Positions 3,549 to 60,480 are shown, counted from the stretch's first letter. The stretch: DNA of 64,000 nucleotides from Ostrea edulis (GCF_947568905.1 NC_079168.1:68324001-68388000), one strand, 5' to 3'. The notes: generated from the sequence alone by a model not told the origin. Program-made: numbers and translations.

Positions 3549-3782
3549 AACTGTTCCGCGATCTTTCTTACTGATTTTGCACTTCTTGTTTTGCTAATGA
3601 AAAAATAACTGATAATTTCATTTTATTAGATTAAAATTTATTAAAAAAATATCTTGCAAACAAATTCATTTATAAATGAGGGGAAACATTTTACATTTGA
3701 ACAAAGAGTAGCAGTGGACAGTCTTGCACTATAGGCAACTTTCTTTAAAAATGTAAATCCTCCTTATTTGAAGTGATATTAC

Positions 3783-12650: not shown

Positions 12651-13051
12651 AAGAAAAAGCGTTGGACTCACAAACACGTTACAATCTCATTTCTGGGGGA
12701 AAATATTGTGCCTCGTGTTTTGATTTACTAGGAAATATACAATCTGAGAATATTACCACGGCATTTATTTTGCAATCGTCGGTGCTTCAAAACAAGCCCC
12801 ATTTTTTTGTTCTATTTTATTTTAGACTTCGACCATTAGTTCTTCGTACCTAGGTAATTTATTATAACTTCAGCTGCGATCTCTATCACGAAAATTAATA
12901 ATCTGATTTACCCCCCCCCCCTTTTCCCTCCTATAAATTCTAAAAAATGGGAGAGATTATTTCTCTAATAAATGAATATATAAGTGCGTGAAAACAAAAA
13001 ACTGTCAATTTACAACTTTATTAAGATTAATTGATAATGAAGAAGTTCAGG

Positions 13052-13437
13052 TTACAGTTCAAAGAGAAGTACCCCGAAAAACATTGATTCACCACCACTA
13101 ACTGTTCCATATTTAAGTTCAACATATACCTTATCGCCAGAAGATAGTTGGAGCACAGATACAGCGGTGGAAGTTTCGTCATAAACATAACTACGACCGT
13201 CCGATCTCGTTTCAAATATATCAATGCCGTTCACGTTCAATGTAGCGCGTACAAGATTCCATTGAGCCTCTATATTGTACAGAAACACGTATACTCCATC
13301 ACGATCTGCAGTAAATATCCCAGTGGTAGTTGAGTAACCATGGTGATATCCGGAGTAAGTTGTACCAAAGACGACCGGCGTTCCGGAAAAATCTCCACTT
13401 AGAGAAGCAAGGAATGCTGGGTATGTGGACCTGGACA
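13052..13437 (-). CDS. Gene A exon 6: third C1q domain, with stop
   Basis: Phase-1 acceptor ctattgtag|TG TCC AGG. Reading YPAFLASL..GYSTTTGIFTADRDGVYVF..SMFFGVLLFEL*. Confidence 0.9.
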
Positions 13438-13804
13438 CTACAATAGTACAACTGTATGATATAGATATAACAATGTTAGTTTAATTCTATGACAAAAGTT
13501 TAAAATTGCTTCGTTGAATACTTATGTTTCGTTATGTTACAATTCTTGTTGATTCTTGATCGATTAGCTTTGTTTCGTTTGTAAATTTTCAGAATTATTA
13601 AACATCAAAAGACAACAAAATTATACCGTAGCTGTGCGTAAATTATTGGTTAATTAAATTGCATATGCATATAAATAATAAAAAAAAACCATTATACGAC
13701 TCTTTGTGAAAGAATTCACTTGTACATGCAGTTTTGCATTTAGTTCATATGTAGTTTAATGATATTTAAAAAAGATTGAAAAGTGTAATTAAACACAAGA
13801 AAGA

Positions 13805-14580
13805 GCTCGGTGAAAGGTGAAGATAACGAACAGTGATCAATCTCATAAGTCCTATAAGCAATACAAAATAGAGAGTTGGGCAAACATTGTCCCCTGGATA
13901 TACTAGAGGTGGGATCAGGTGCCTAAGAGGAGTAAGCATGCCCTGTCGACAGGTCACACCCGCCGTGAGCCCTTTATCTTGATCAGGTAAACAGAGTTAT
14001 CCGTAGTGAAAATCAGTGTGCCAAGAAAGGCGTAACAATCGATATGAAACAGTCAGACAGCATTTAACCCAATGATAGGTTGTATTGACGAACTAAATCG
14101 TTATAAGGACTATAGAATTTGCAAAATGCTGACTTCAATCGAGACTGTTGAAACCCCTGTACCATCAACTTGTTTGTCAGTAGCTTACCTCGATTTAAAA
14201 ACTGACTATACGCAAAACAAGCTCTTGCGTATCGAATCAGTTGAGATATATAAACACCATATGCAGGTGATAATGGAATATTGCTACATAAATATGGGAA
14301 GTTGACGATGAAGAAGCTGAAATCATTCCGTTTGTCATACAGTTGAGTTGTCAGTTTGCCGTTAATGTCTACTTTCAATAGAATATCGAAGTATGAAGCA
14401 GAAGTGGACGACTCTGTGGTGTCTTTTATTTCGAGCTCATAGGGATATATCGACATATGAATGAAAGCTATTATTGTTGATAGACAAAACGTCGTCGATA
14501 TATCAAAATGTCGAATTGAAGGCCATAGCAAATGATAGGTTGTACTAGCAACGACCATAGAATGTGCGAAATGCTGACTT
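13805..14580 (-). mobile_element. Naiad-like PLE RT 3' half plus tail, in gene A intron 5
   Basis: ELEIKDTTESSTSASYFDILLKVDINGKL..YARAC reading, followed by the tail. Confidence 0.85.
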
Positions 14581-14764
14581 TAAAAGAAACTGTTGGAACC
14601 CCAGTCAATTCAAATCATTTCATTTTAATTTATCGACACAGCATAATCAGGGATACTGTGTAGTTCGTTGAGTCTATATGGCAGGTAATGTTGAAGGTTC
14701 AAACATTGCTTTTTCGTCATTGTGCAGTTGCTATCGTAATTCTACCATGAACTCTAGTTTTCTG

Positions 14765-15011
14765 GGACCTACATGACCGAGTGGTTAGAGCATCGCGCTC
14801 CAAATCACACGGCCTCTCACCTCTGTCGGCGCGGGTTCGAATCTCACTCGCGCCGGTAAGTGAGAAAGTTTCCCAGTTTACTTTCGGAAGGTCGGTGGTC
14901 TCTTCCCAGGTACATTGTATCTGGGTTCTCTCTTCCACCAATAAAAACTGGGTGCCACCATATAACTGAAAAATTGTTGAGTGTGGTGGAAAACATCAAT
15001 CAATCAATCAA
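14765..15011 (+). mobile_element. tRNA-derived SINE (V-domain-like)
   Basis: A box gaccgagtggttagagc, B box gggttcgaatc, (caat)n tail, and 12-bp TSD tctagttttctg at 14753-14764 and 15012-15023. Confidence 0.85.
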
Positions 15012-15523
15012 TCTAGTTTTCTGTTGGTATAATTATTGTTAGAACTTCCCGTTTAATTCCAACTTAATCATATTTGTGTTTTCCCCCCTGGGAATTAGGC
15101 ATAAAATGGGAATCGTCTTTTAGTATTTCTCTAAGTGTTTTGTATGTCATTTGGTATATCTCATATTGGGTTGTGTGTTTGTATTGGTATTTTCTTCCCT
15201 ATTACTAAACAAGAGTAGTAATTGAAGTCTGATATGGACGTTCTGTACTTACTAAGCTCTTTCTTGTATTTCAGGTTTTTCATGAACCCTTTATTTTTGC
15301 GAAGGAACATGTAAAGTACATATAAATGTACTCAAACAAGTAAGTCATGCTTTTTTAAGGGAGCGAACCAAAACAGATGCTATTGACATAACGCTAAACA
15401 TTTTCATTCCCATATTTTGTAACGTTGTAATGCCTATTTAAAATCACTCATAACAGATTTAAGGTTTTCAATTATTTTCTAATATTACATTTTAGTGAAG
15501 GCAAAAAAAAGGGGGATTCTTAC

Positions 15524-15949
15524 CACTCATTTTATCTACTAGTTGCCATCCCGCAAAAACAGAAGTGGTAATCAATGCATCAGGATTCACGTCGTTATCA
15601 GCATCTACATACACAGCATCACCAGTATCTAACCAAGCAAATGTCATGTAGCTCACACTGTTGTAATATCCGTTCCAACGCACCCAAACTTTCGGCTGAG
15701 ACGTTCCATTACTGAAGTGAAATGTGCAACTGTACCAGGAGCTTCCATTGCTAAGAGCTGACATCATGAAGATATAAAGACCAGAACGAGGCGCCACAAA
15801 GTTTCCAGTTGATGTGGAGTACGCATTATCTGTGTCTAAAGTTTCGTTGTCATACACGATATGAGAACTATTTACAGAACCTTCGTTCTTGTACTTGATA
15901 AGAGAACTACTTACAGCACGTGAAAGGAGAGCATTAAACGCTGTGTCAT
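15524..15949 (-). CDS. Gene A exon 5: second C1q domain
   Basis: Acceptor tttttag|AT GAC ACA and donor AGT G|gtaag; 426 nt, phase 1-1. Open reading DTAFNALLS..AYSTSTGNFVAPRSGLYIF..TSVFAGWQL. Confidence 0.9.
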
Positions 15950-16034
15950 CTAAAAAAGATAAATGGATATTTATTAGTTTATCAGAAGTATCCTACCCCG
16001 GTACTACTGGACGTTGATATGGGATTTCTCGGAC

Positions 16035-16480
16035 TCCATGAAAAGGTGAAGATAGCGAACAGTGATCAATGTCAGAATTTGTATAAAGAATACAAAAGTA
16101 TAGGTTGGGCAAACACGTACCCCTATATATACCGGAGGTTGGATCAGGTGCCTAGGAGGAGTAAGCATCATCCTATGGCATGTAAATAGGGGTATGGTTG
16201 TTTGTTTTACAACCCACATGTGTATGCTTAGCGCTTACGACCGTTGCAATGAAGGTTCTTTAACGTGTTAACACCTGTCGTGACACGTGACTAACGTTTT
16301 TAATGTCATATCCAAAAGACTCGTGATTCGCACTTCTAAATGCAGAGCGTTTGGCGAAGGAACAATCACTATTTATGTTTACGTATTAGGGTTGACAGGA
16401 CCAAGGCACGAGCGGGGTTCAAACTCATGAACTTAAGGTTACGAAGCGAACGCTCTACCACGGATATACCGCGACCGTTT
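16035..16480 (-). mobile_element. Degenerate Naiad-like tail (16035-16175) next to a degenerate SINE (16190-16480)
   Basis: Tail motifs, followed by sequence alignable by eye to the 9272-9612 SINE. Confidence 0.6.
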
Positions 16481-16704
16481 AGAAAGAAGTATGAAATCTC
16501 GACCTTCAACAACGAATCATTTCAAACCACTACCATTTGCGACTTCACAGTTTTGTTGTGGTGGCCTGAGGACCACTGAGAAGGAAAGTGTACGTTTACA
16601 ATCACAGAAATCCACAAACAGAAGTCTGAAAAATTGGTATTACAGGTTGTCTAAGTCGATCCATTTATTTTTAAATAGCTTTTGAAACCGTGTAGATAGT
16701 TTAC

Positions 16705-17082
16705 CTGTTTTATTGATCTTCCAGCCAGAGAACATAGTATGTCTCGCTTCTGCACGTCCTGTAATGACCCTCACCGACAATTTATCGTTTACTGTAAGGT
16801 TAAGGACGGCAAAAGATGTAGATGTATCGTAATTAAAAAAACTTTGATGAGCTTTGGACAGTCCCGCCTGCATTCCGTTCACAAGGAGAGCCCCTTCTGT
16901 CAATTGTCCGTATGTCTCTATCGTCCAGGAGAACACATACAATCCTGTTGTGGATACAGTAAAAACGCCAGTGACATTGTCGTATCCACCTCCGATATTT
17001 GTGATCACGTGATCGAATATAATGTCAGTTACATTTGTAGAACTGTAAGCCACGGCATGGAAGGCAACATGTTCCAACATCA
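16705..17082 (-). CDS. Gene A exon 4: first C1q domain
   Basis: Acceptor ttttctag|TG ATG TTG and donor ACA G|gtaaa; 378 nt, phase 1-1. Reading VAFHAVA..IIFDHVITNIGGGYDNVTGVFTV..TMFSGWKI. Confidence 0.92.
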
Positions 17083-18321
17083 CTAGAAAACATTGAGAGC
17101 AGGATATTTATCATGATCAGCTAAACATAGCAATGGTACAAGTTATTTTTTTTATAGTAATGCTAGGGATATCATTTTACACATATCAAAGTTGAAGCAA
17201 GTTTTTGGAATATTTTCTATTGCTTGTCCATCTGTATGTTGTTCTTTGTATTGTCTTAATATTTCAAATTTGTGTTCATTTTCTTCGTTTAATATATTCT
17301 ACAAAACTGTACGTAGCGTCAGCGGTGACAAAGCAAATTGGGAGAAGAAAAAATTCAACATGTTTTCCGTAGCTTAGTCTTCACAGAAGGGAAATTATGT
17401 AATATTATAAATGAGAAAATATGTCTCCATTAATTGAAAACATTCTACAGTCAATAATGAGGTAGTAAAAAACTAATGTTATAGTAAAGTATCCCTATAT
17501 GAAATAGATATCAAAGATAGTGATATCACAGCTTTCTAAAAATGTTATTTCCTGGGACTAGAATTAAATTTGAAATATTAGAATGAATGTAGACAACTAT
17601 TAATGTAGATTCTCTAAAACATTATATATGATAAGGTAAAAACGAGAAAATTGAGGTGAAGTGTTGAAATTTCAAACATATATTTAAAAAAAAACCCCAC
17701 ACCAATTATTACGTAGCAAAACCATTATAGTATTTACTATCAATTTCGCACCATTTCTTGAAATTTGGCGTGAAAATGACGCATGTACTGTTTCTTGTCA
17801 TGTTTTCCTTGACTAAAACGTCATTTCATCCTTGTTTTCTTTTTCAATAGATAGAGTGAATTTATGAAGAAGAATAAAATTTCTATCAAAAGCGAGAAAC
17901 AAGTATAAAGTAACAGTTCACAAAGTGGCTCTGTATTAGTTTCATAAAGGTTTCCAAAAACTACTCTTTTTTCTCAAAATTTCAAAAACCTTTTTGAGAG
18001 TCGAAGAGTGATCACTACAGCACATATCTATGATTTACCAATATTTTTTTCTAAAAGTAAAATGATAACTGAATTAAGATTTTAAAAAACTAAAACATGG
18101 ATCAAGAATATGTCTACTCACTAAATTTTCTAATATGAAATGAATTGATAAAGCTGTATATAAAAGCTTACTTTCCTTGTTGTTTACGAAGATTTGTCTG
18201 AACTTTTATATTATTTTAACGTTCTGAATTCAAATAGGTAATTTTACTATAAAGTTTGAATATTTGTTATCAAACCAGGGAACGTGGTTCTTGCGATAGT
18301 AAGACCAATAGAAGTGTATAC

Positions 18322-18498
18322 CTGATGGCTCACATCGATATGATAATGATGACCACTTTCCACCGGGAGGACAATTGATGATATTTTTGGTGCCTACACC
18401 AGTATAACCAGGATTACATTCGAATGTGACTGATGGAGGGGAAAACGTCTTGATTGCCACTCTTCCATTTTCTAAGTCTGGAGCTGGATCAGCACATC
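18322..18498 (-). CDS. Gene A exon 3: sushi/CCP domain
   Basis: Acceptor ttttcaag|GA TGT and donor TCA G|gtata; 177 nt, phase 1-1. CADPAPDLENG..FECNPGY..INCPPGGKWSSLSYRC has the four Cys and the Trp of a CCP domain. Confidence 0.88.
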
Positions 18499-18869
18499 CT
18501 TGAAAAGCAGATAATCAAGATCTTTATACAGATTAAAATCTTTGAATGAATGAAAAAAGTCGTAATTTTCAATCGGATTAGTGTAAACTGGAGTTTAAGT
18601 ACATTCTGCTGAAATAACGGAAAAACGATTCGGGAATGAATTGGAGGATTACTTTAATCTACACAAGAATACAAAAAAAAAATAATTAAGCTATGCTTTT
18701 TAGATATCGACATGATTATATACTGAGTAAAATAAGTTTAACAATTGAAATATCTAGTATAATACATTTAAAGAAAAATATATCGTATATTTTAAATAAA
18801 TTGAAATTATGGATTATCATCACGTAACTAATGATAATGTCAAAGGTTAAAGAGGATCGTATTTCGATA

Positions 18870-20120
18870 TTAAGAAATCGACACAAAACAGCTGAGGGGC
18901 GTGGATTGGAAAGTAACAATCAGTATCATTCTTTTGTATGGCCTCTAATTGCAGCACTAACAGCTATACAACAGCCTATCGTGCTCTCTATCAGGTCTCT
19001 GATCTCGAGCATGGTGATCCGGTCCTAATCGTGCAGCAGAACAAACGTCACTTACGTTACGTTGTTTACGTTATGTCGTTGTCTTCAAGAATGCCTCAAA
19101 CATGTTCAATTGGTTTAAATTTGGCGACCTTGCCGGTCAATTCAAGACTTCAGCGTTTTTCTGACATTGGATGTCTTGTGTATGCCGTGTGGCGTGGTAA
19201 TGTGCGTTATCTCGGTGGGAAATGCCCTCATGTCGTCGCCGCAGAAAGGGAATAACAACAGGATCAATGAGATCGATCTCATTGAAGTATCTTTAGGAAT
19301 TTAAAGCCCCATTTATTGTCACAAGATCTGTTTTACCCTGGTGGCTTATTCCGTCCCAAACCATAACATTACCCCCACCATAGCGGTCACGTTGATTAAT
19401 GGTGTCTGAATCATGTCGATCATCATTTCTACCTCTCCAAATACGAAATTTTCCATCGGCAATTTGACTCGTCGGTAAACGGTACCACATTCCATCGCTG
19501 TTGAATCCAGTGATACGTATGTTGTTCCATGTAAGGGGGTATTAACGATGACATTGAGTTAGTGATACTGCAGAGAGAAGTGTTCGAGCCCAAAGCTTTG
19601 CACAACGTAGCCTGTTTTACACTCTGTCCACATAACCCTGCTCCAGTGGCACAGCATAACTCGTCTGCAACTTTAGAAGCAGCCATGGAACGATTACATC
19701 TTGACGGTGTGATGATGAGATGATCATGGCTGTCAGTCTTTTTCGCAGACGTCCTGAGCGCCACGGATCAGAAACATGTCCAGTAGTTTGAAATCGGTTC
19801 AGAAGTCGGCAAATGGTGGATAGACGGACATCAAAGTGTTGGGTGAAATCTTTTTGCAAACACCCAAACACTTAGCATCCTTATGGCTCTTTGGATTTCA
19901 TTTTCGGAAAGTCTTTGTCATTTTTCCATTCAATTCTTCAGCAGTTCTTTATCGCGTTTTATTCATAGGCGTACTTGAAAACATTTTCGTGTAAAAATTT
20001 CTAAAACCATGCGGATTCGAACATAACTTATTGTATTGTAGAATTTTTATCGCATTCAATGACGTTATTTTCGAGTGCCAGTTTTCAAAAATGTTTCTGT
20101 TTTTTTGGTTACATTTGTAT
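18870..20120 (-). mobile_element. Degenerate Tc1/mariner transposon in gene A intron 2
   Basis: Broken frames give STICRLLNRFQTTG..RSGR, FTDES and RYGGGNVMVWDGISHQGKTDL, typical of Tc1 transposases. Ends are approximate. Confidence 0.75.
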
Positions 20121-20463
20121 CTCTTGATTTTATGGAAACATGGTAAAAAATTAAGATATTTTTATTTTATATTATCCCTATATAAATACATTTGCTAAAT
20201 TTGTTTTGCACAGTACATAAAAGAACACTAAACCCAAAAAGAAAATAATAATAAAAGACAAAATAGATAAACAAGCAAATTCTTTTTAAAGTTTTGCTTT
20301 TCGCCTCAAAATTTGTCCTTCTATGAGCATCTTTCACATTTTATTCCCCATGTTCTTTATACGACTGAATTCATATTTGCAATTGAAAAATAACGGCAAA
20401 GATCATATTGAATAATGCATGAATTATTGTACCTTGTTTCATTTAAATAAATAATTCTTTTAC

Positions 20464-20560
20464 CTACTGCGATGCAGACAAATTCCTTGGAACGTGTACG
20501 GACACATTTGGAGTACTGTTTGCACGAGAGCGTCCCACATTTCTTACCTGTGTAATCAAG
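20464..20560 (-). CDS. Gene A exon 2: short four-Cys EGF-like segment
   Basis: Acceptor gtttgcag|CTT GAT and donor GTA G|gtaaa; 97 nt, phase 0-1. Reading LDYTGKKCGTLSCKQYSKCVRTRSKEFVCIAV. Confidence 0.75.
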
Positions 20561-20881
20561 CTGCAAACACAAACATGTGCAAAATGAACCTTTATCCGCG
20601 ATATATCATGATCATATTTGATTTCAATAGCGATAAACTATGATTTTATTTCTGATATACTACTATTTTTTCTTTCTGTAATAAACTTTTATTTCATTTG
20701 TGATATATTATATGTATTTCTCGTTACATTCTAAGATTTTATCTGCGATACTAAGTATACAATGAATTCTAAAACAAGAGAATAATTCCAAAAAATAAAG
20801 GTTCTCTGAAATTTGATATAAAACACGAGTAGTTTAAATACTTGCGTAACTATCTGTAGAAATTCAACGTGTGAAACTTAC

Positions 20882-21199
20882 GACACCAGGTATTTCCTTG
20901 TATATAAAGCTGCTATCGTTGTCTAAAGTCAGGCTTTCGTTTTTCTTCTGACTGTTCAATTCGCACATAAACGTCGTGGGGTTAAAGTTAATCGACAAAC
21001 ATATGGCATAGGCTTCGCATTCTTTGAAACATAAATGGATTCCGATTTCAAATATCACCATGAACGTAGAATTTGGTAATTTCTTTCCGATCTCCCCGGT
21101 ATCACTGGGACTGATACACGTGTTCGTCGTAGTAACAAGTCGAAATAAAAATAAAAGAACGAAAACATTCCTGTTTGTAGATTTACATAAAATAGCCAT
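20882..21199 (-). CDS. Gene A exon 1: signal peptide plus PAN/apple-like domain
   Basis: MAILCKSTNRNVFVLLFLFRLVTT, then CFKECEAYAICLSINF..CELN (PAN pattern). The phase-0 donor GTC|gtaagt matches exon 2. Confidence 0.82.
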
Positions 21200-21919
21200 G
21201 ATAAATTTGATTAGGGAATTGAATTAATACTAGACATCTCTGGCTGCTTTCTGCTGATGCCTTCTGAGTTTTTTTTTTATATACCTGTACACTGTCAATG
21301 GGCGTGTATTTAAAACATATTTCTATTCAATTTTCATTACCGGGTATTTTATTGCATTATGATATATTATTCATTCGTTTTCCGAATATGCATTGAAATT
21401 TTATACTGTATTGTATATCACATTACTGTCAGACTATTCTAGGACGTGCAATTGCAAAACCTGATTGTAAGAAAATCTAGATTAAAAACAAGCACTGTAA
21501 TATCAGATTGGTGTGTATAATTTTTGCTGGTGAGCAGCTGTCAATGAAATCTTGATATGTAATAAAATGTGTCGAAATCTAATGAGAAGAATAAAAGATG
21601 TATGGAAAATCGTTTTATTATTACTAGTAATGTTTGACAGTTAATCATACCAATCTCAATATTTATCAAAAGCGATCTGAAATGCATTACTAGTGGCAAC
21701 AAGATTTAGAATATTTAAATTAACACGTGGCGTATTTCACATAGATTTTCATCGACTATTTCAAGTCTTTTAAAATCTCTTGCACTTTTCCTTGTTTAGA
21801 AGTTGAAAACTCGGGTAGATAATCGGAGTTCTGGGAGAGATTCTCCTAAGCAGTAAGTATTTCTATTACGATGGCTTTAGAACAGACTACAAAAATTAGT
21901 TCAAAACTATCAGGATAAA

Positions 21920-21924
21920 AATAA

Positions 21925-21965
<41 letters not shown>

Positions 21966-22138
21966 CCAAATAGAAAGAGTTGATATCACACAGTCAAAAT
22001 AATTCAATAAAAAAAGCAGGGAAATATACAGTTCCAAAATATATTTAATTCACTAGCGCTTATCCATCCTCAGGTGAAAATAAATCACTAGCGCTTTCTG
22101 GATTTTAATATCCATCCAAATTGGTACCGTATAAGTTT

Positions 22139-22197
<59 letters not shown>

Positions 22198-22403
22198 CAA
22201 TAAAAAAAGCAGGAAAATATACAGTTCCAAAATATATTTAAATCACTAGCGCTTTCTGGATTTATTTAAAATTTGTATTCACCTGAGGATGGATGTTAAA
22301 ATCCAGAAAGCGCTAGTGATTTAAATATATTTTGGAACTGTATATTTTCCTGCTTTTTTTATTGAATTATTTTGACTGTGTGATATCAACTCTTTCTATT
22401 TGG

Positions 22404-22455
<52 letters not shown>
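21920..22455. mobile_element. Penelope-type pseudo-LTR remnants in tandem and inverted arrangement inside (TA)n
   Basis: A block of about 130 nt occurs on both strands between three (TA)n tracts and contains a hammerhead motif. Confidence 0.65.
22279..22319 (+). ncRNA. Minimal type I hammerhead ribozyme
   Basis: tcac CTGAGGA tggat-gttaaa-atcca GAAA gcgc TA gtga: core, 5-bp stem II, palindromic AGCGCT stem III and 4-bp stem I. Confidence 0.75.
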
Positions 22456-25233
22456 CACTAAGTTTGAACAATTCAACAATACCCGATACCTAAAAGTGTC
22501 AGATCCACAACATGGATACAAGGTCAAATACAAAAAATTATACAAAGCACTAAAATGACCAACGACACGAACAACCAGATTGTCAAATTTTGGGACAAAT
22601 CGTCCCTTCTTCAGAACGAAAAGAATTACATAATGTGGCCAATATCAACAGAGAATAGTAACAAAAAATATATATAAATACATTTAGCACTACAACTACA
22701 CTAATCTGCAAACGTATTTACACCGCAGACTATATGTGCTTTTGGTTTTTAGGCTTGCCAATCAATGTTAAAAGCGGAGCGAATTAGGGCATGCCTTATT
22801 TGTTCAAAGAGCTGATCCAAAATGTACGAAGTGATAAAAATAGACTTAATACACCGATCCACTGTCGCAGCATAAACCCCGCCCACCATGGTTACGTTAT
22901 AGCAACAACGGAGACTCGGACAAAAAGTAAACAATGGCGTCGACGGCAAACGCCTTCGAGATAATCCCGGTTAACTTTTGTTAGATTACTTTAAAATTGT
23001 CATCATTTCATCCCTTGTGAAGGAGAAGGGTTGATTTTGATCATTCATTTTTATTTATATGCTTTCAAATTATTTCATTCCACTCACAAAAGCGTAGAAA
23101 TCACATCGAAACGACAGGCCCCGCGTTCTAGGATGACGATCCTCACTCGGGTTTTGTAATGCTTAATTCTCATTACTCTTGCCAAACAGGCTGTTGAGAT
23201 TTGTTTTCATATATTCATTCCATAATTTACATTCCTTTGTCAGTACACCCCTACTAACGTGTTCGGAACATATTCTTTATCGGTGTTAAGTAGAGCGTAA
23301 AATCAAAGACTATCGAATGAAATATAATCTCGCTGCTCCGAGACTCCAACGCGAGCTACCTGAGACCCGGTGAATTTTCTACCGGATATGGATGTGCTTT
23401 AAGGAATTCCAGTGTTAATGTAAGTATCAATTAGAAATTATGGTATATTGTGTTTTATTTGTTTTTGCAATATATAGATCTACGTATCAATGCATTATTT
23501 TCCTAATGCCATCAGCTAATAAAGCTTAAATAAGAAATGGTAAGAAAGAGTTATCGTCCTTAGATTTGGACCTAGGCCAACTTTGAAAGAACTCTTGATT
23601 ATCGTGAAAAAAAAAAAAAATGAGAGGGCGTCTTTCTATTTCAAAGTGCCATAATTAAATTTTAATGTTGCATAGGGATTGTGTTCAAATTATCAAATAC
23701 TGAAATGTTGCACACAATTTACCATTTTCACTCAGAAAATACTATAGTCTGTTTCATGTTTGAGGTATATATATATATATGTATCTGTGAATGTGCATGT
23801 TACAAGCAAAGAAGATGCATTGCAAGTATCTTAAAACTTCTAAACTTAATATTTCTTTGGTGGAAACAGAATCATTTTCCTAATTTAGCAGTATAGAAAA
23901 AGTGGATTTATTTTATGAAGAAAGTAAATTTTATTGATTGGATCAATTGTGGTGACCAGGGGGTGTATACTACCCATTCATAATTGTTTGAAATGTAAAG
24001 ATTTTAATAATTAAACTCATTGATGCATGCAACACACCTAAGAAAATTAGAATGAATGAAAAGTATATGACATGTATTTGTATGATTATCATTTGGTACA
24101 TATGTAAATGAAAAATTCCAACTTTTCCTTATATGATATGATTTAATAATAATACCATATATATATAGCACCCTTTTCATACACTCTGTACGCTCAAAGG
24201 TGACCAATTATGGATTGTTTTAAAGTGGAGGGAAAGCAACAATAAATGGAAATTAGAACATGACTAGATGTTGTACAATGCATGTATATATATATAGTAA
24301 CCATTGCCAAAGTATATAATGTACCAGTGATAATTCTAAAAGTTGATCACAAAACTGCAAAGGACATCAGGGGACAGTGCATTGTATTTAACAGGATCCT
24401 CCCTGTATCTAATGCAGGATTGTAATTGTCATTTATAACATGTATATCAAATCTGGTAAAAAATGTGCATATTAGACACCAGTGGACAATGCGTTAATTA
24501 AAAGAATTTTATCAGATCATGCATCAATCTCCTTATATGTAGCAAAATATCGCAGTCTTTAATTTATATAAAATCATAGTAGAAAACATTTAAAATTCCT
24601 GAGTGGTGCAGGTCTCATACTCATTTACAGATTGGCAGTTTATAGCTCTGAGTTTCTGTAACCACACACATGTATTACCAATGTTTATTTATGCAAACAT
24701 TTATGACATATATTACTCATTAACACATATATTAATGTGACGGGACAATATACATAGATTATATACATCATAACTTTTTCCTTTATTGATACATTAAGCA
24801 GTAAATATTTTCATAAGTCATTTCTAAAAAAAAACTTCTCCTTTTATGAATGAAATACCTACATGCATTTCTGATCTTTTTAATTAATTTAGATTTACTT
24901 ACTCCAATTACAAACTTATAATTACAGAAACACACATGTAATAATATCAATAATCTTTTTCATATTTAGATTAGTAATGTATCTGTATGTTAGAGAACAA
25001 TCTGTACAAAAATTTAAAATCTTAAATCAAATATTGAATCACAATTAGGATTACATTGCACAACACTGTAATTAACTATTGTTTTAATATACATCAACTA
25101 TATTTTGTCTGTAAGAAACCTTTGTTGTTTCATTTTTAGTATTACATTTCGTAACATAATAAAACAGTTAAGTTTCAGAAATCAAAATTGAGCGATGATG
25201 ATGATCTCATCCTAGCTGCAATAATGTAGCCCT

Positions 25234-25281
<48 letters not shown>

Positions 25282-51778: not shown

Positions 51779-52811
51779 TTTAGATATAGATATTTTTTCT
51801 TCACTTTTTTTTCTAATTAGATTAAAATTTCAGATAACTGTGCACTTACATCTTATTTTAAAGGGGCATTAGCTGTGAAAGTGATGACAACCATTTTCTT
51901 TTTTTCTTCTCAAAATCTCTCGATGATATTGAAATACATATTGATGACTAATAAGAACATTTATTTTTTATTATGTACAAAAACAAGAGAATTAACCCTA
52001 ATAAAACTACGTTAGATAACCGCTTTTAATGTAAAGAAATATATACGGAAGATGTATTCACTGCACCCAAATCAAATCATTTCTCAAATAAAAACAAAAA
52101 CAGCATATACATTTTGCTGACAGCATGCAAAGGTAACTAGAGAATAATTATACTGTCTTGCAAGACAATAATATTCAATCACCAAAATCACATATTCATT
52201 CAGAGGTTAAAAGGTGTTTGAAATAATTAAATACAAGTGTAATTATTACTTTAATATATAATAACTATTATAGGGCAACTTTCATTGAATTCAATATTTG
52301 GTGACAAAATGACCGCTAATTCCCATTAAGACAAGAAGATGGAAGGGGTACACAAGAAATGTTGCATATATGTTCTATTATAGAAAATGTTGTGATGGAT
52401 ATATTGAAATGGCTCTTTTATTCTAAATATTCAAGAAAAGTCGTGAACTTTGGTGCCCTTGCTGTTTCAGTTCTGAAATTTTAAGAAAAAAGTTGTGAAC
52501 TTCTGGCACACGATTCTGAATACCAAAGAAAAAGTTGTGGTACACTTCTGGCACACAGTTTTGATTCTGAATACCAAAGAAAAAGTTGTGGTGCACTTCT
52601 GGCACACTGTTTCATTTAGGAAAAGTTGTGGCGCACTTCTGGCACACTGTGCCACTAGTGGCACACTGTGTGCTGCTAGTGGCACACTGTATGCCGCTAG
52701 CGGCATTAGCTGCACACTTCTGGCAAACAGCTCTGGCACACTGATTTGTTTTCCGCAAACTTGCAGCAAACTTGCGGCAAATTTGCAGCAAACTTTACAT
52801 TTTGGTAAGGG
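47900..52811. mobile_element. 4.9-kb TIR DNA element with subterminal repeat arrays (EnSpm/CMC-like)
   Basis: Termini cccttaccaaaat..attttggtaaggg flanked by TA on both sides. ctggcacac and gcggca arrays lie at 47920-48310 and 52420-52790. Superfamily is inferred. Confidence 0.7.
48600..49350. repeat. About four ~180-bp tandem units (HINE-like insert)
   Basis: ctgatcac recurs at 48751, 48932, 49113 and 49293. Confidence 0.75.
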
Positions 52812-53279
52812 TACATGTACATATATACGTTTAGAATTGTTAAGCTGATATTGACATGCACGTCTTCAGAGATTTATTTTATTGATACTAGGGTCTAAAT
52901 ACGGAGAAAACAAGCGTTCATTATGAAGAAGCATATCATGGGAATACTTTTCAATAAAGAAGCTTCCAGACTGGCATATAATCTTTTCATGGGCGCCTTC
53001 GCCATTGAATGTTTGGAGATGAATGCTAATGAACATTCGAAATACTCATAAAGACAATGCCTGTTTTGTGAGTAATTTTGAAATACAATCACCAACTTAT
53101 TAGGAAAACAGAAGCAAATCTGCATTAGAATGAGGATCTTCAGATTTTAGCCTGTTAATGCTGATTTAGCGCCATATATTCGTTTCATTGCAAACCTACG
53201 ACTGCTAATTATTGAATGAGGTGGACATGGTCATGTTTAACTGAATTTCATCGTTGTGCATTGTGTGAGAGCTGGGTAC

Positions 53280-53409
53280 CTGGAACGGTGGGCCTAGATG
53301 CTGAAGAACAGTTGGCGTTGCAGAGATCCCCATCACAACAGTGAATACACACACCAAGTAGATCTCGCCTCCTGCCGACGACTGGTCCAGACAAAAGCGA
53401 GGAACAACC
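53280..53409 (-). CDS. LU-like module 2, exon c (putative gene B 5' part)
   Basis: Acceptor ttatctag|GGT TGT; reading GCSSLLSGPVVGRRRDLLGVCIHCCDGDLCNANCSSASRPTVP; candidate phase-1 donor CCA G|gtacc (weak). Confidence 0.8.
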
Positions 53410-53493
53410 CTAGATAAATCCGTTTTACGACAATTAGGAAGCAAAAATGGATTCATTTCTTTGACGTTAAAAGTTGCAACAAAGAAAACATAC

Positions 53494-53562
53494 CAAACGA
53501 GGTTCACACTTGGAAGTAAAATATTTCTGTTCGAAGACGTTTCTTTCGTGTATAAGACATTT
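53494..53562 (-). CDS. LU-like module 2, exon b
   Basis: Acceptor ctttttag|AAA TGT and donor TTG|gtatgt; phase 0-0; reading KCLIHERNVFEQKYFTSKCEPRL. Confidence 0.78.
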
Positions 53563-53894
53563 CTAAAAAGAGAAGAGTGAAATGATGAAAATAGCACTGG
53601 AGACAAAAAATGAAATACCCTTCCATGTTGAATAAATGTATAAATCTTATATCTTTGAATGCACGATTGTTGATGCACCAGCGTTCTGTTCACACCTGAA
53701 AGTTATATTGAATTAAAAGTAAAATTTTATGGATTGTTTTTAAAATTGAACAAAAGATATCAATAATTGAAACACGCTCAAAATTGAAAATCAAATACTT
53801 GAATGTAAATACACCAATTTGATTCTATATACATCAGGTCACAGATCAGGTTTAGCAGGAACTAAGACATCTAAAAGCTTCTACTAGGACGTAC

Positions 53895-53989
53895 TTGATT
53901 GAGGTCACACGGAGTGATGGTGTGACAGTCCGTTGGATCCGCAACATCCTCACAGTCAAAGCAGATAGGGCCTCGAGTATCGGGGTACT
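53895..53989 (-). CDS. LU-like module 2, exon a
   Basis: Acceptor gaatag|AG TAC and donor CAA|gtacgt; phase 1-0; reading YPDTRGPICFDCEDVADPTDCHTITPCDLNQ. Confidence 0.8.
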
Positions 53990-54109
53990 CTATTCACCAA
54001 TATTTAAAAAAAACCAATGGTTTCATTCAGATACTACACGACAAAGAACAGACATGCTCGATAAATTCTATTATACATCTTGTTCGTTTATACTTTATCC
54101 TGTACTAAC

Positions 54110-54236
54110 TAGGAGTTCCGCATCCGTAGGCGTTACATATATCTGTGGTACAGCAGTCCCTACACTGTACAACGCCGTCAATATACTGACTCCGTTTGGT
54201 GGTTATAACGGTTCTATTATCTGTCGCTCCACATTC
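54110..54236 (-). CDS. LU-like module 1, exon c
   Basis: Acceptor tttttacag|GAA TGT and donor CCT A|gttagt; phase 0-1; reading ECGATDNRTVITTKRSQYIDGVVQCRDCCTTDICNAYGCGTP. Confidence 0.82.
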
Positions 54237-54725
54237 CTGTAAAAATGTTAATCTTCATTTACATTATGATAGGTAAAATCGGAAAAAGTAGCAATGCATT
54301 TCTACAACGTTTGGTGGCGGTACATTCGGCTTTGATTCCGTTCATAATTGTTTTTCAAAGTTTCTCGACAACTTCCATTGCTATTGGAATTTAAGGTTTT
54401 CATTTTCTTATGAAACAAAGGTAATGGTGAAAGTATTTTCACTTCAGTATTGATTTAATTTCATTCCTCGGCTAGATAGCACAACAAAAATAACGCCGTA
54501 TAGGTAATTTTTGTTATCAAAATTGCAATATTCAGCTCTCTTTCTTTCTATCACTGTCCCACGGTTCGGAGTTATCACACGATGCTCAACATTTGAAAAA
54601 GAGAAGAGTGTATATGGAAAAGACGTAATTCATTACGAATTTAACTCCACTTTTTTTGGCACACTGTTTTCCCCTAAAGTAGCTTTAAAACTTCATTGTT
54701 ATTTCGGATTTCAAACATTTCGGTT

Positions 54726-54774
54726 GATCATCACTGAAGAGACATTATTTGTCGAAATGCGCATCTGGTGCATC
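54726..54774 (+). ncRNA. Minimal type I hammerhead ribozyme inside a retrozyme-like insert (54634-54800)
   Basis: catca CTGAAGA gaca-ttatt-tgtc GAAA tgcgca TC tggtg. Confidence 0.8.
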
Positions 54775-55224
54775 AAAATTGGTACCGTATAAGTTTTACA
54801 TGAAGATTGTTTCGGGTGATCACGATTACTGCGGCGAATAGATCAGTAGAACATTTGATTTGTGATGTGGAGGTCGTGAACTCAAATATTGACCACATAA
54901 GTCCAGAGAATATCAAACAAGGAAGTTCAGACAATATTCAAACTACTGATTTGTAACGTAACGCTTGGTATTTGGTGAAGTTTCTGTGGTATATCGAGAA
55001 TCTTTTGAATGAGAAAAAAATCGCAGTCGTTTGCACGATTCAGAACCACATTGTCTAGGACAGAGTTCATGTGCCTATCTTTGTAACCTCGCTCAATTAA
55101 ACCTCCTGCTGTTGACATCTTGTACAACCGATCGACCGACCGATCTATTAGTATCCATCCCACCATTCACAAACTCACCCATATATCTGTCTATCTACGT
55201 ACCAAATAATCTATCAAAAAAGTG

Positions 55225-55450
55225 AAGATAACGAACAGTGATCGATGGAAAGGTGAAGATACGGAACAATGATCAATCTCTTAACTCCCATAAAGGATGA
55301 AAAATGGAGAACCCTAGAACATACCAGAGGTGGGATCAGGTGCCTAGGAGGAGTAATACTCACCTGTCGACAACATCTCATAAATCCTATAAAGAATACA
55401 TAATTGAGAGTAGGACAAACACGGACTCCCAGAAACACAAGAGGTGGCAT
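55225..55450 (-). mobile_element. Two partial Naiad-like tails
   Basis: gtgaagataacgaacagtgatc and cagaggtgggatcaggtgcctaggaggagtaa motifs. Confidence 0.7.
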
Positions 55451-55606
55451 CAGATGTCAAAGGACCTTTTCGTCTCTTTTACAAATTAGAACTGATAATT
55501 GCACATCTTAAACTGCATTTGATCTTGATTTTTCCTTTGGATGCAATGATAAGTTTTGCAAGTCGGAACTTTAGATTGTGGAAGCTTTATCTGAATGAAG
55601 ACCAAC

Positions 55607-55678
55607 CTTTTGTGGATAACATCCAGTCCAATAACCAATATCGCCATTATCTGCTCGGTACTGCTGCACTGCACACAC
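55607..55678 (-). CDS. LU-like module 1, exon b
   Basis: Acceptor ctgacag|GTG TGT and donor AAG|gttggt; phase 0-0; reading VCAVQQYRADNGDIGYWTGCYPQK. Confidence 0.78.
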
Positions 55679-55765
55679 CTGTCAGAATAAATTGAATTAC
55701 TAAGCTTCTTCAGATAACTGTACAAGTTAATGTTGTTATTAAGTATTGAACATAATATATGTTAC

Positions 55766-55842
55766 CTCTCCATTTTGACAGCGCTCAATTTTATTACACA
55801 GCCGAGGTTCAGTAATATCGGAACATCTCAGACATGTTAAAC
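55766..55842 (-). CDS. LU-like module 1, exon a
   Basis: Acceptor ttttatcag|GT TTA ACA and donor GAG|gtaaca; phase 1-0; reading LTCLRCSDITEPRLCNKIERCQNGE. Confidence 0.8.
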
Positions 55843-56276
55843 CTGATAAAAATCGAAAACAAACTTTTGGAATTATGAATGAGACAAGAAGCTCATAAAA
55901 CCCCGAATCGTTAGTCGGGTTAGAATAACCTGAAGAAATGAAAACTTACGGTTCATATACATACATTCATTATTACTAACGGGTCGGGACACTTAAAAAC
56001 TTTGACAGGGAATGTGAGTCCATATACCCTGCCAAGAATCCATATAACTAATGTGTCTTACTGCAGAGCGATCATTATAGAAAATGTCTCATGTATTTGT
56101 GTGTTTACAATCGTGCAGACGATAAACATCGGTATTACGTCACGAGCGTAATGGTATATGCGTAAATCATTTAAAGTAAATACATGTAAACGTAATTTTA
56201 CAAATAATTTCTGAAAATAAATGATACATTTAGAAAAAAAAAATGTTTTAATATGCCTTAATTTTACTCTTCAGTA

Positions 56277-56610: not shown

Positions 56611-57059
56611 CATAGTATGGTGACCGATTCTACAACCACTCTGGATAATGATATTAAAATGCCGTTGTTTAAAGACGCGAACAGAAGAATAGGAATGGTG
56701 GGAAGGGTTCACACTGGTATTGTCCAGGTGAGCTAAACCTATCACAACAGAAACACGTTTTATTGTACATTATCATACATTGAAACGTCATTGAATAGAG
56801 TATATTACTTTTACTGAACGTACTTACCTAGAACGCATCTTCCAATAACTGAGGCACAGTATAATAAAACTGCAATACAAAGTAAATCTTGTTTTAGTTT
56901 TTAGGGACAGAGCACATACCAGTCACTGTTGTAATGTTTTGTTGAAATAAACTTACGAGGTACGTTTTTCATATTTCGAATATTATATCTGAACTTGGCG
57001 TCAGTTACGTTCAATTACACTATCAGATAAGAATGCAAAGGTCGATGGAATTTCCTTTG

Positions 57060-57329: not shown

Positions 57330-60300
57330 AATATGTCTATTGTCTTCATTCTCTGTCTATTGTCTCCATTCTCTGTCTATTGTCTTCATTCTCTGTCTAT
57401 TGTCTACATTCTCTGATTATTGTCTACACTCTCTGTCTATTGTCTCCATTATCTGTCTATTGTCTTCATTCTCTGTCTATTGTCTACATTCTCTGTTTAT
57501 TGTCTACATTCTCTGTCTATTGTCTACATTATCTGTCTATTGTCTCCATTCTCTGTCTATTCTCTACATTCTCTGTCTATTGTCTCCATTCTCTGTCTAT
57601 TGTCTACATTCTCTGATTATTGTCTACACTCTCTGTCTATTGTCTCCATTATCTGTCTATTGTCTTCATTCTCTGTCTATTGTCTACATTCTCTGTTTAT
57701 TGTCTACATTCTCTGTCTATTGTCTACATTATCTGTCTATTGTCTCCATTCTCTGTCTATTCTCTACATTCTCTGTCTATTGTCTCCATTCTCTGTCTAT
57801 TGTCTACATTCTCTGATTATTGTCTACACTCTCTGTCTATTGTCTCCATTATCTGTCTATTGTCTACATTATCTGTCTATTGTCTACATTATTTGTCTAC
57901 TGTCTCCATTCTCTGAATATTGTCTCCATTATCTTTCTATTGTCTACATTATCTGTCTATTGTCTACATTCTCTGTCTATTGTCTACATTCTCTGTCTAT
58001 TGTCTACATTATCTGTCTATTGTCTCAATTATCTGTCTATTGTCTCCATTTTCTGTCTATTGTCTAATTTCTCTGTCTATTGTCTACATTATCTGTCTAT
58101 TGTCTCAATTATCTGTCTATTGTCTCCATTTTCTGTCTATTGTCTACATTATCTGTCTATTGTCTACATTATCTGTCTATTGTATTCATTCTCTGTCTAT
58201 TGTCTACATTCTATATCTATTGTCTACATTATCTGTCTATTGTCTTCATTTTCTCTCTATTGTCTTCATTATCTGTCCATTATCTCCATTTTCTCTCTAT
58301 TGTCTACATTCTCTCTCTATTGTCTACACTCTGTTTATTGTCTACACTCTCTGTCTATTGTCTACATTATCTGTCTATTGTCTCCATTCTCTGTCTATTG
58401 TCTTCATTTTCTGATTATTTTCTTCATTCTCTGTCTATTGTCTACATTCTCTGATTATTTTCTACATTCTCTGTCTATTGTCTACATTCTCTATCTATTG
58501 TCTTCATTCTCTGTCTATTGTCTTCATTCTCTGTCTATTGTCTTCATTCTCTGTCTATTGTATACATTATCTGTCTATTGTCTCCATTCTCTGTCTATTG
58601 TCTACACTCTCTGTCTATTGTCTTCATTATCTGTCTATTGTCTACATTCTCTGTCTATTGTCATCATTATCTGTCTATTGTCTCCATTCTCTGTCTATTG
58701 TCTTCATTTTCTGATTATTTTCTTCATTCTCTGTCTATTGTCTACATTCTCTGATTATTTTCTACATTCTCTGTCTATTGTCTACATTCTCTATCTATTG
58801 TCTTCATTCTCTGTCTATTGTCTTCATTCTCTGTCTATTGTATACATTATCTGTCTATTGTCTCCATTATCTGTCTATTGTCTACACTCTCTGTCTATTG
58901 TCTACACTCTCTGTCTATTGTCTACATTATCTGTCTATTGTCATCATTATCTGTCTATTGTCTACATTATCTGTCTATTGTCTCCATTCTCTGTCTATTG
59001 TCTACATTATCTGTCTATTGTCTACATTCTCTGATTATTGTCTACACTCTCTGTCTATTGTCTCCATTATCTGTCTATTGTCTACATTATCTGTCTATTG
59101 TCTACATTATCTGTCTATTGTCTACATTATTTGTCTACTGTCTCCATTCTCTGAATATTGTCTCCATTATCTTTCTATTGTCTACATTATCTGTCTATTG
59201 TCTACATTCTCTGTCTATTGTCTACATTCTCTGTCTATTGTCTACATTATCTGTCTATTGTCTCAATTATCTGTCTATTGTCTCCATTTTCTGTCTATTA
59301 TCTACATTCTCTGTCTATTGTCTACATTATCTGTCTATTGTCTCCATTTTCTGTCTATTGTCTACATTATCTGTCTATTGTCTACATTATCTGTCTATTG
59401 TCTTCATTCTCTGTCCATTGTCTACATTCTATATCTATTGTCTACATTATCTGTCTATTGTCTTCATTTTCTCTCTATTGTCTTCATTATCTCCATTTTC
59501 TCTCTATTGTCTACATTCTCTCTCTATTGTCTACACTTTCTGTTTATTGTCTACACTCTCTGTCTATTGTCTACATTATCTGTCTATTGTCTCCATTCTC
59601 TGTCTATTGTCTTCATTTTCTGATTATTTTCTTCATTCTCTGTCTATTGTCTACATTCTCTGATTATTTTCTACATTCTCTGTCTATTGTCTACATTCTC
59701 TATCTATTGTCTTCATTCTCTGTCTATTGTCTTCATTCTCTGTCTATTGTAGACATTATCTGTCTATTGTCTACATTCACTGTCTATTGTCTTCATTCTC
59801 TGTCTATTGTCTTCATTCTCTGTCTATTGTCTCAATTATCTGTCCATTGTCTACATTCTCTGTCTATTGTCTACACTCTCTGTCTATTGTCTTCATTCTC
59901 TGTGTATTCTCTACATTCTATGTCTATTGTCTACATTCTCTGTCTATTGTCTCCATTTTCTCTCTAGTGTCTTCATTATCTGTGCATTATCTCCATTTTC
60001 TCTCTATTGTCTTCATTCTCTGTCTATTGTCTTCATTCTCTGTCTATTGTCTACATTATCTGTCTATTGTCTACATTATCTGTCTATTGTCTTCATTCTC
60101 TGTCTATTCTCTACATTCTCTGTCTATTGTCTCCATTCTCTGTCTATTGTCTCCATTCTCTGATTATTGTCTACATTCTCTGTCTATTGTCTTCATTCTC
60201 TGTCTATTGTCTACATTCTCTGATTATTGTCTTCATTTTCTGGCTATTGTCTTCATTTTCTCTTCTATTGTCTACATTATTTGTCTATTGTCTCCATTCT

Positions 60301-60480
60301 CTGATTATTGTCTACATTCTCTGATTATTGTCTCCATTACCTTTCTAATGTCTACACTCTCTGTCTACTGTCTTCATTATCTGTCTATTGTCTACACTCT
60401 CTGTCTATTGTCTACATTCTCTGTCTATTGTCTACATTCTCTGATTATTGTCTCCATTACCTTTCTATTGTCTACACTCT
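57330..60480. repeat. 20-bp satellite A (about 155 units) with higher-order duplications
   Basis: Unit ttctctgtctattgtct(a/t/c)ca; 200-bp, 300-bp and about 1.24-kb repeated blocks. Confidence 0.97.

Follow-up and report, generated by a model that had tools for sequence, protein, structure and literature searches.

Genes A and B, both located within a single 64,000-nucleotide stretch of the Ostrea edulis genome (the window), are intact paralogues on the same strand and belong to the multi-C1q (smultiC1q) class of bivalves. Our overall explanation, to which we assign a probability of roughly 0.75, is that in this pair of paralogous multi-C1q genes the tail of gene A was re-headed, and that the tail itself, as predicted by modelling, is an intramolecular trimer.

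Gene layout and the shared C1q tail

Both genes lie on the minus strand of the window, which is part of chromosome OX387708.1, with gene A spanning 21199-13052 and gene B 56972-41999 (all coordinates are those of the window). They are not new, as RefSeq models exist already under the name "uncharacterized protein". Gene A corresponds to XP_048735534.2 (LOC125650984, 593 aa, labelled P0209) with 100% identity exon by exon and gene B to XP_048732014.1 (LOC125648968, 586 aa, labelled P0206) with 100% identity in 11/11 coding exons. The sequences are therefore no different from those in RefSeq, whose records hold neither a function nor a family name or an evolutionary interpretation. The coding sequences amount to 1782 nt for gene A and 1761 nt for gene B, and the 14,974 nt covered by the latter equal the span of the annotated gene. 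The product of gene A consists of a putative signal, PAN, Cys-rich, Sushi and C1q x3 and that of gene B of a putative signal, LU x2 and C1q x3; the N-terminus following the start codon is hydrophobic in both proteins. An earlier note on this DNA had given the range as 13052-55842, which is right for the C1q exons but misses the start of gene B, whose ATG is at 56972 with two signal exons beyond that range.

The three C1q domains of gene A are encoded at 16705-17082 (378 nt, E 9e-16, residues 199-323 of P0209), 15524-15949 (426 nt, E 2.6e-9, residues 325-465) and, including the stop codon, 13052-13437 (386 nt, E 4.5e-14, residues 467-593), and those of gene B at 46928-47305 (378 nt, E 4.8e-18, residues 211-335 of P0206), 46104-46475 (372 nt, E 6.8e-9, residues 337-459) and, again with the stop codon, 41999-42381 (383 nt, E 1.5e-13, residues 461-586). 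All six exons match Pfam PF00386 (E 7e-9 to 5e-18), have AG/GT borders and are entered in phase 1, and the first two of each gene also end in phase 1, so that the exon sizes and phases on which the note had based its claim of paralogous C1q exons proved exact. At the level of the full proteins, three stretches each were recognized with 136 bits for P0206 and 128 bits for P0209 (cut-off 23.7), and both have the two or more PF00386 domains per polypeptide that define the multi-C1q class.

A comparison of the tails revealed 86/74/85% amino-acid and 85.6/78.6/78.1% nucleotide identity for C1q1/2/3, with dS of 0.20-0.37 and dN/dS of 0.29-0.46; on this sequence evidence the tails are under purifying selection. 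It could be argued that either A or B is a copy that has fallen silent or is decaying, with no function at present, as no RNA contig identical to the LU exons of gene B appeared in the runs examined and the protein clusters have no transcript-derived members: the RefSeq prediction is the sole member of those of both P0206 and P0209. But these RNA runs are few, small and apparently from another organism, and considering the dN/dS values and the 17/17 coding exons that are open with canonical splice sites, we regard a silent copy as improbable.

The similarity between A and B extends about 370 nt beyond the stop codon and trails off about 40 nt ahead of the C1q1 acceptor. A single blastn alignment connects 12685-13538 with 41640-42482 (78% over 867 nt), and since the 3' non-coding flank of gene A at 12685-13051 still aligns with 41640-41998 beyond gene B, this gives the 3' limit of the duplicated segment. 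Upstream of the acceptor the genes differ completely, as had been claimed before: neither blastn nor tblastn detected similarity between the two heads, and no LU relic was found near gene A and no PAN or Sushi relic near gene B. We assume that a B-like gene, or only the three tail exons with the 3' flank, was duplicated to a site about 21 kb downstream, that the breakpoint would lie in the intron immediately before the C1q1 acceptor and that the copied tail then became spliced to foreign head exons, whereby the frame would have been kept because every module border is in phase 1.

The head of gene A comprises three exons, each 100% identical to P0209. The first (20882-21199, residues 1-106, ending in phase 0) begins with the start codon at 21199 and encodes the signal peptide and a PAN/Apple domain (PF00024, PAN_1, 25.0-26.9 bits, cut-off 21.4), and the third (18322-18498, residues 140-197, phase 1-1) a Sushi/CCP domain (PF00084, 25.8-26.6 bits, cut-off 20.7), from which donor 18322 leads to 17082. 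Between them lies a short 4-Cys module (20464-20560, residues 107-138, phase 0 in and phase 1 out). The order signal-PAN-EGF-like-sushi with a phase-1 end, as first read from the sequence, holds apart from the EGF-like label, which was rejected for this exon: it has only four Cys in 32 residues, whereas EGF is a six-cysteine pattern, and no EGF family was found in Pfam at E up to 0.05.

The LU head of gene B and its junction with the tail

Gene B starts with a short exon at 56957-56972 that contains the start codon and the first five signal-peptide codons (P0206 residues 1-5) and ends in a GT donor; the remaining signal peptide is encoded at 56828-56869 (phase 1-1, residues 7-19). Two LU modules follow, as the note had proposed, in six exons that are all 100% identical to P0206. 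LU module 1 is composed of 55766-55842 (phase 1 entry, residues 21-45, 72% identity to LU x2-C1q x3 proteins of other oysters), 55607-55678 (phase 0-0, residues 46-69, limits that recur in the O. edulis P0014 gene) and 54110-54236 (phase 1 end, residues 70-111), which carries the CC...CN motif. LU module 2 is composed of 53895-53989 (phase 1 entry, residues 113-143), 53494-53562 (phase 0-0, residues 144-166, 70% identity to homologues) and 53280-53409 (residues 167-209), the last ending at donor 53280 in phase 1. A candidate for the middle exon of LU module 2 near 53695 was discarded for its stop codons, and 53562-53494 takes its place.

Module 2 passes the Pfam cut-off for PF00087 (Toxin_TOLIP, 24.0-24.7 versus 21.2 bits), and module 1 stays below that for PF00021 (18-23 versus 24.8 bits), which is passed by the orthologue P0203 with 27.3 bits. 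Both share a conserved cysteine framework ending in CC...CN, with cysteines invariant in 14 aligned heads. The structural model of the head is weak (pLDDT 64.3), and Foldseek ranks LU, three-finger and related receptor ectodomains highest for it, with E no better than 6e-4 and a single-domain TMt of 0.6-0.68. The best matches for this weak model are the multi-LU proteins of the Ly6/uPAR type (uPAR, C4.4A, TEX101, CD177), which resemble the head in the tandem modules of presumed three-finger type, the Cys pattern and the C-terminal CC...CN. However, these vertebrate proteins are GPI-anchored or stand-alone, whereas in gene B LU x2 is fused to the predicted trimeric C1q x3 tail and a hydrophobic C-terminal tail is absent.

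The splice from the LU head to the C1q tail, 53280->47305, had been considered the doubtful link, but it is exactly the junction in XP_048732014.1, where the residues of the C1q1 exon come right after those of exon 8, and annotations for several oyster species show the same layout. The link is supported by this predicted RefSeq model and by conservation. In the runs examined the LU exons of gene B were covered only by diverged contigs, from a paralogue or a related species, and by DNA; in run X2 one contig stops exactly at 54110, the end of exon 5, and contig record 11 spans exactly 53989-53895, i.e. exon 6, and then goes on spliced. The possibility that the LU x2 exons, or the PAN-Sushi exons of gene A, form a separate gene for a small secreted protein ending by read-through of the last donor, and that the predictor misjoined them to a headless or differently started C1q x3 gene, seems very remote to us. 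Such fused models would be in line with the length of the intron at 47306-53279 (5,974 nt, full of tandem repeats and repeat copies), but no alternative exon, signal-like exon or head relic was recognized therein, and the C1q1 exon itself lacks a signal peptide. Headless RefSeq models are known (P0195, 376 aa), many C1q1 exons begin with a conserved Met, and no RNA read crosses 53280->47305 or 18322->17082 in the few small runs, apparently of another organism; on the other hand, the phases are compatible, models from several oyster species join head and tail in the same way with an identical exon limit, and in the related MAM-C1q x3 proteins head and tail are joined on transcript contigs.

Head changes in the oyster C1q x3 family

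Proteins of the LU x2-C1q x3 type are annotated in O. edulis, M. gigas, C. angulata, C. virginica, S. echinata and S. cucullata. Gene B belongs to them with the order signal-LU-LU-C1q x3 and colinear tail domains, its LU exons match those of other members (LOC125648058, LOC105348215, LOC111104384, LOC105327878 and others) exon for exon with 50-100%, and the exon plan recurs in the O. edulis P0014 gene. The family is conserved with this exon plan across Ostrea, Magallana/Crassostrea and Saccostrea. The heads on closely related C1q x3 tails are of four kinds, namely LU x2, coiled coil, PAN-Sushi and MAM, with MAM and C1q x3 joined on intron-free transcript contigs from two SRA runs. A word-limited search turned up no PAN-Sushi-C1q x3 protein in other oysters than O. 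edulis, and the donor of the head of gene A was looked for without success.

The tail tree places A and B as sisters (90/89) within a clade of O. edulis (100/99) to which one LU-headed and one coiled-coil-headed gene also belong; LU-headed lineages branch off basally at three levels, and at least five head changes are needed. LU-headed monophyly was rejected by the AU test (p 2.7e-58, for an LU group defined after the tree had been inspected), i.e. the LU-headed genes are paraphyletic. This paraphyly, together with the number of head changes and the sister position of A and B, argues for an ancestral LU head and a derived PAN-Sushi head, so LU x2-C1q x3 is probably ancestral and gene A a re-headed copy. 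The idea that a portable C1q x3 cassette was combined with different heads by way of phase-1 introns is thus supported, but the change probably went in the opposite direction to a cassette being joined to LU. Furthermore, gene B and its paralogue LOC125648967 each come after a Peptidase_M49 gene and are therefore whole-gene duplicates, whereas A has the tail alone in common.

A rather unlikely but more serious alternative is that the genes with LU, coiled-coil, PAN-Sushi and MAM heads represent distinct lineages of long standing whose tails were repeatedly homogenized in each genome by gene conversion, so that their likeness would be no record of re-heading. The tails indeed cluster by genus whatever their head (in the tree also with a Saccostrea clade, 98/94, beside that of O. 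edulis), and family members are located on one chromosome within about 150 kb. However, the dS between A and B is 0.20-0.37 in all three exons without near-identical tracts, and the non-coding 3' flank as well as the 100 nt that precede the C1q3 acceptor have diverged equally (78%). The lack of PAN-Sushi-headed relatives in the word-limited search outside O. edulis also speaks against this alternative, and so do the coiled-coil heads, which by eye show no evident likeness between Ostrea and Saccostrea. Re-heading of gene A remains our preferred reading.

Predicted structure and possible role of the tail

In the AlphaFold model of the gene B tail (pLDDT 92.5, pTM 0.92), three jelly-roll protomers are predicted to pack about a three-fold axis. 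Foldseek superposed the model in full length on the single-chain trimers of engineered human gC1q (5HKJ/5HZF), adiponectin (4DOU) and Cbln1 (5KCA) with TMq 0.87-0.88 and an rmsd of 2.7-3.1 A. These are man-made three-chain fusions, whereas the tail of gene B consists of three tandem exons with about 20% identity to them and is thus predicted to be a natural single-chain gC1q trimer. The human C1q A/B/C head is similarly one recognition head made from three different gC1q modules, but there the modules are separate chains on collagen stalks, while the oyster tail is probably one chain without a stalk.

Described bivalve multi-C1q proteins are secreted and, like A and B, have a row of three gC1q domains without a collagen stalk: the smultiC1q class, of which 21 genes, mostly three-domain, were reported in C. 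virginica (PMC6835236), HcC1qDC6, each C1q domain of which binds bacteria, LPS and peptidoglycan (PMC5519582, a paper in which the word "trimer" is absent), and furthermore HcC1qDC5 and CfC1qDC-2 (PMC10672478). They have a signal peptide or a coiled coil ahead of C1q instead of the PAN-Sushi and LU x2 heads of A and B, and we found no report in the literature of LU, PAN-Sushi or MAM heads on multi-C1q proteins. By analogy to the characterized triple-C1q proteins, A and B may function in secreted pattern recognition.

The three C1q domains, which are nearly linker-free, would fold as one intramolecular pseudo-trimeric gC1q head. A single-chain trimer would account for the portability of the tail: if it trimerizes without collagen or coiled-coil stalk, any N-terminal module could be attached, and this module would decide what the recognition unit couples to. 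We would give even odds to the broader idea that the tail is a natural single-chain heterotrimeric gC1q head and a free-standing phase-1 cassette, repeatedly re-headed in oysters (LU x2, coiled coil, PAN-Sushi, MAM; at least five switches), which gave rise to a combinatorial family in which one asymmetric recognition head is connected to various partner-binding modules.

The C1q genes of bivalves number in the hundreds, and their diversification has mostly been described as tandem duplication of single-domain genes. The locus points to a second route, in which a three-domain tail, probably a complete single-chain trimeric head, was moved among unrelated N-terminal modules by phase-1 exon shuffling, and the predicted trimer would offer a structural reason why multi-C1q proteins can do without collagen or coiled-coil stalks. 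Furthermore, LU x2-C1q x3 can now be named as a conserved, uncharacterized oyster family that is amenable to testing in O. edulis, for which Bonamia and Marteilia disease is a limiting factor.

Two genes with a common C1q tail and unlike heads

Genes A and B are already recorded in RefSeq and are both located on chromosome OX387708.1 (GCA_947568905.1). The protein XP_048735534.2 (P0209; O. edulis LOC125650984, 593 aa, with Pfam C1q, PAN and Sushi domains) matches each of the six gene A exons at 100 % identity, and XP_048732014.1 (P0206; LOC125648968, 586 aa) does so for every exon of gene B, with coding sequences of 1782 nt (A) and 1761 nt (B). Spliced models were searched one exon at a time, and the full-length forms in trees and folds are the database proteins P0206 and P0209. 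The stretch is free of N runs, has a G+C content of 35 % and contains six open minus-strand exons matching the Pfam C1q profile with E values from 7e-9 to 5e-18. These encode the tail of three C1q domains (C1q1 to C1q3) in gene A (17082-16705, 15949-15524 and 13437-13052, minus strand) and in gene B (47305-46928, 46475-46104 and 42381-41999, minus strand). Their sizes of 378/426/386 nt and 378/372/383 nt are exactly those given in the earlier note, which was also right that all six are entered in phase 1, with AG/GT borders.

A comparison of the two tails revealed a protein identity of 86, 74 and 85 % for C1q1, C1q2 and C1q3 and a DNA similarity of 85.6, 78.6 and 78.1 %. With dS of 0.20-0.37, the dN/dS ratio is 0.29-0.46 and therefore indicates purifying selection on both tails alike. 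The DNA similarity extends about 370 nt past the stop codons, takes in roughly 100 nt of the intron preceding C1q3 and is lost at its 5' side some 40 nt before the C1q1 acceptor is reached. Upstream of this limit blastn and tblastn between the two genes came back empty, in line with the claim from the sequence that A and B are unlike upstream of the first C1q acceptor. Furthermore, neither LU relics near A nor PAN or Sushi relics in the intron of B were found. Much of the noise in A/B dot plots comes from one repeat family with five copies (549-1178, 3749-4060, 14067-14579, 38864-39394 and 44628-44951), which is present inside introns of both genes and whose conserved open frame, 100-200 codons long, matches nothing in Pfam. 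Between B and A lies the gag-pol frame of a Ty3/gypsy-type retrotransposon (31741-35880, plus strand), open without interruption for 1380 codons, with protease, RVT_1, RNase H and integrase domains (Pfam), where the public record calls a gene as well.

The head of gene A is composed of three minus-strand exons. The first (21199-20882) carries a PAN domain (Pfam, 26.9 bits) behind the start codon and a hydrophobic N-terminus, and the third (18498-18322), which ends in phase 1, encodes a Sushi domain (Pfam, 26.6 bits). The exon in between (20560-20464) has four cysteines in 32 residues and no EGF match, so the label 'EGF-like' it had received is unsupported. The head of gene B has two LU modules of three minus-strand exons each (55842-55766, 55678-55607 and 54236-54110; 53989-53895, 53562-53494 and 53409-53280), which both have phase 1 at entry and at exit and share a cysteine framework with CC...CN. 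A candidate for the middle exon of the second module near 53695 was rejected, as it has stops in every usable frame and its length of 77 nt breaks the phase; the real exon is 53562-53494. The second module lies above the Pfam cut-off for Toxin_TOLIP (24.0-24.7 bits versus 21.2) and the first narrowly below that for UPAR_LY6. The AlphaFold model of the head of B is weak (pLDDT 64), and its best Foldseek matches are uPAR, C4.4A, TEX101, CD177, PSCA, GPIHBP1, Lypd6b, Lynx2, three-finger toxins and CD59; related receptor ectodomains rank behind these with weaker scores.

A search of the sequence upstream of 55842 for a signal peptide contained in one exon found nothing, because the putative signal peptide of B is divided between two small minus-strand exons (56972-56957 and 56869-56828, ATG at 56972), which we located using P0206. 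The earlier range of gene B, ending at 55842, was thus too short, since both exons lie beyond it. Further upstream, between B and a Peptidase_M49 gene, there are two arrays of a 20-bp satellite (57334-60482 and 61101-62190) with 157 and 54.5 copies and 86-87 % matches.

The junction between LU and C1q in gene B

The splice from the last LU exon to C1q1 (53280->47305), which had been regarded as the doubtful link, is present in the RefSeq model XP_048732014.1, and a HMMER search with the C1q1 exon of B led to proteins of 593 and 608 aa with two LU modules ahead of C1q x3. Word searches and cluster look-ups that followed led to the RefSeq proteins of A and B. What supports this LU-to-C1q junction is a predicted model together with conservation. 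In a length-limited word search using just the C1q1 exon, all matches were single-exon ORF fragments of genomic contigs, with none across a junction. Logan members of M. gigas clusters were rejected as transcript evidence, as they are genomic last-exon ORFs.

The only RNA runs containing parts of the stretch, one labelled as RNA and two guessed to be RNA, all cover small shares of it, and the contig alignment was confined to 49900-55899, with the intron of B being 5,974 nt long. The contigs of one run (X4) are identical to the window; the two guessed RNA runs (X1 and X2) belong to a different organism code, and most of what they cover is repeats. One contig of X2 (record 11, 336 nt) matches the exact limits of exon 53989-53895 and continues with 53390-53294, and the 88 letters between both matches equal the length of exon 53562-53494 together with the 19 nt that open the following exon. 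This contig is a spliced transcript of the second LU module that joins its three exons in order. Because of its 3/95 and 14/97 mismatches, it was rejected as a transcript of B; its source is a paralogue or else a related species.

The intron between head and tail contains tandem repeats at 47980-48301, 48727-49301 and 52512-52705 (units of 107, 181 and 51/21 bp), which translate to spurious cysteine-rich open frames on both strands. The intron between exons 2 and 3 of the first LU module carries two repeat pieces of very high copy number (54500-54899 and 55100-55499). In each of the four runs aligned, contig depth summed over these pieces exceeds that of the unique sequence beside them by a factor of thousands, and many loose contig ends lie at 54801, 55319-55323 and 55356.

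A tail family with different heads

Proteins with several C1q domains are known as the class smultiC1q, to which 21 C. virginica genes belong, most of them with three domains (PMC6835236). Our literature searches found no account of C1q x3 tails headed by LU, PAN-Sushi or MAM. The LU x2 - C1q x3 architecture is encoded in O. edulis by LOC125648058/059 and LOC125648967/968 and occurs also in M. gigas (LOC105348215, LOC105327878), C. angulata, C. virginica (LOC111104384), S. echinata and S. cucullata, in all cases under the label 'uncharacterized protein'. In LOC125648058 the limits of the LU exons are the same as in B, and linker and C1q1 are located in one exon. LOC125648058 and LOC125648059 belong to the more distant family I and are located on a chromosome other than that of A and B, where they lie in tandem about 6 kb apart (OX387709.1, 1.52-1.56 Mb). 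The window itself starts with the terminal C1q exon of a third family member (2-367, plus strand, Pfam E 1e-18), which is convergent with gene A, has 55-62 % identity to the third C1q domain of the A/B tail family and belongs to a gene whose remainder is beyond the window.

Tails close to those of A and B are also found behind coiled-coil heads, e.g. in XP_062607509.1 and O. edulis LOC125673044. In addition, two intron-free transcript contigs (Logan contigs L003 of SRR21102241 and L004 of SRR14492789) encode C1q x3 immediately after the last part of a MAM domain, with the frame open up to the 5' contig end in both, and their tail groups with M. gigas LOC105327878. MAM is thus a fourth head type, observed at the RNA level.

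In a single-domain tree the first, second and third domains of A and B each cluster with the matching domains of family proteins, and therefore the three-domain order is old. The whole-tail tree (30 rows, 382 columns) has one clade (94/92) with LU family I, then P0015 (LU) and then a clade of 16 rows (100/99). Within the latter, an O. edulis group (100/99) unites LOC125648967 (LU), LOC125673044 (coiled coil), B (LU) and A (PAN-Sushi), in which A and B are sisters (90/89). In Saccostrea an LU-headed protein is basal to coiled-coil-headed ones, and in Magallana the MAM-headed transcript is paired with an LU-headed protein. At least five head changes are needed on this tree, and constraining the LU-headed tails to monophyly, a group named after the tree had been seen, costs 312 log-likelihood units (AU p 2.7e-58).

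B and LOC125648967 are about 90 kb apart, each after a Peptidase_M49 gene. The unit of Peptidase_M49 gene and LU x2 - C1q x3 gene is present in two copies (OX387708.1, ~68.37 and ~68.47 Mb). Since this neighbour precedes both genes, they are duplicates of the whole unit, and the arrangement points to a segmental duplication that included the Peptidase_M49 gene. Gene A is located about 21 kb downstream of B and has only the tail in common with it. The likeness of these tails may also have arisen through gene conversion, which is a live alternative, but the simplest interpretation takes LU x2 - C1q x3 as ancestral and A as a copy of a B-like tail that received a new head.

Predicted fold and role of the tail

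AlphaFold2 modelled the tail of B (residues 209-586, 28 aligned tails) with a pLDDT of 92.5 and a pTM of 0.92. In Foldseek, the engineered single-chain trimers of Cbln1 (5KCA), human gC1q (5HKJ, 5HZF) and adiponectin (4DOU) align to the whole model across about 407 columns (TMq 0.87-0.88, rmsd 2.7-3.1 A), whereas ordinary single C1q chains align to just one third of it. Since the match to single-chain trimers is full-length, the tail is predicted to be a covalently linked pseudo-trimer, a reading of C1q x3 tails of which our literature searches found no account. By analogy with HcC1qDC6, HcC1qDC5 and CfC1qDC-2 (PMC5519582, PMC10672478) we infer that these proteins may act in pattern recognition. 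A pseudo-trimeric tail would require no trimerising stalk, which would explain how it can function behind any head.
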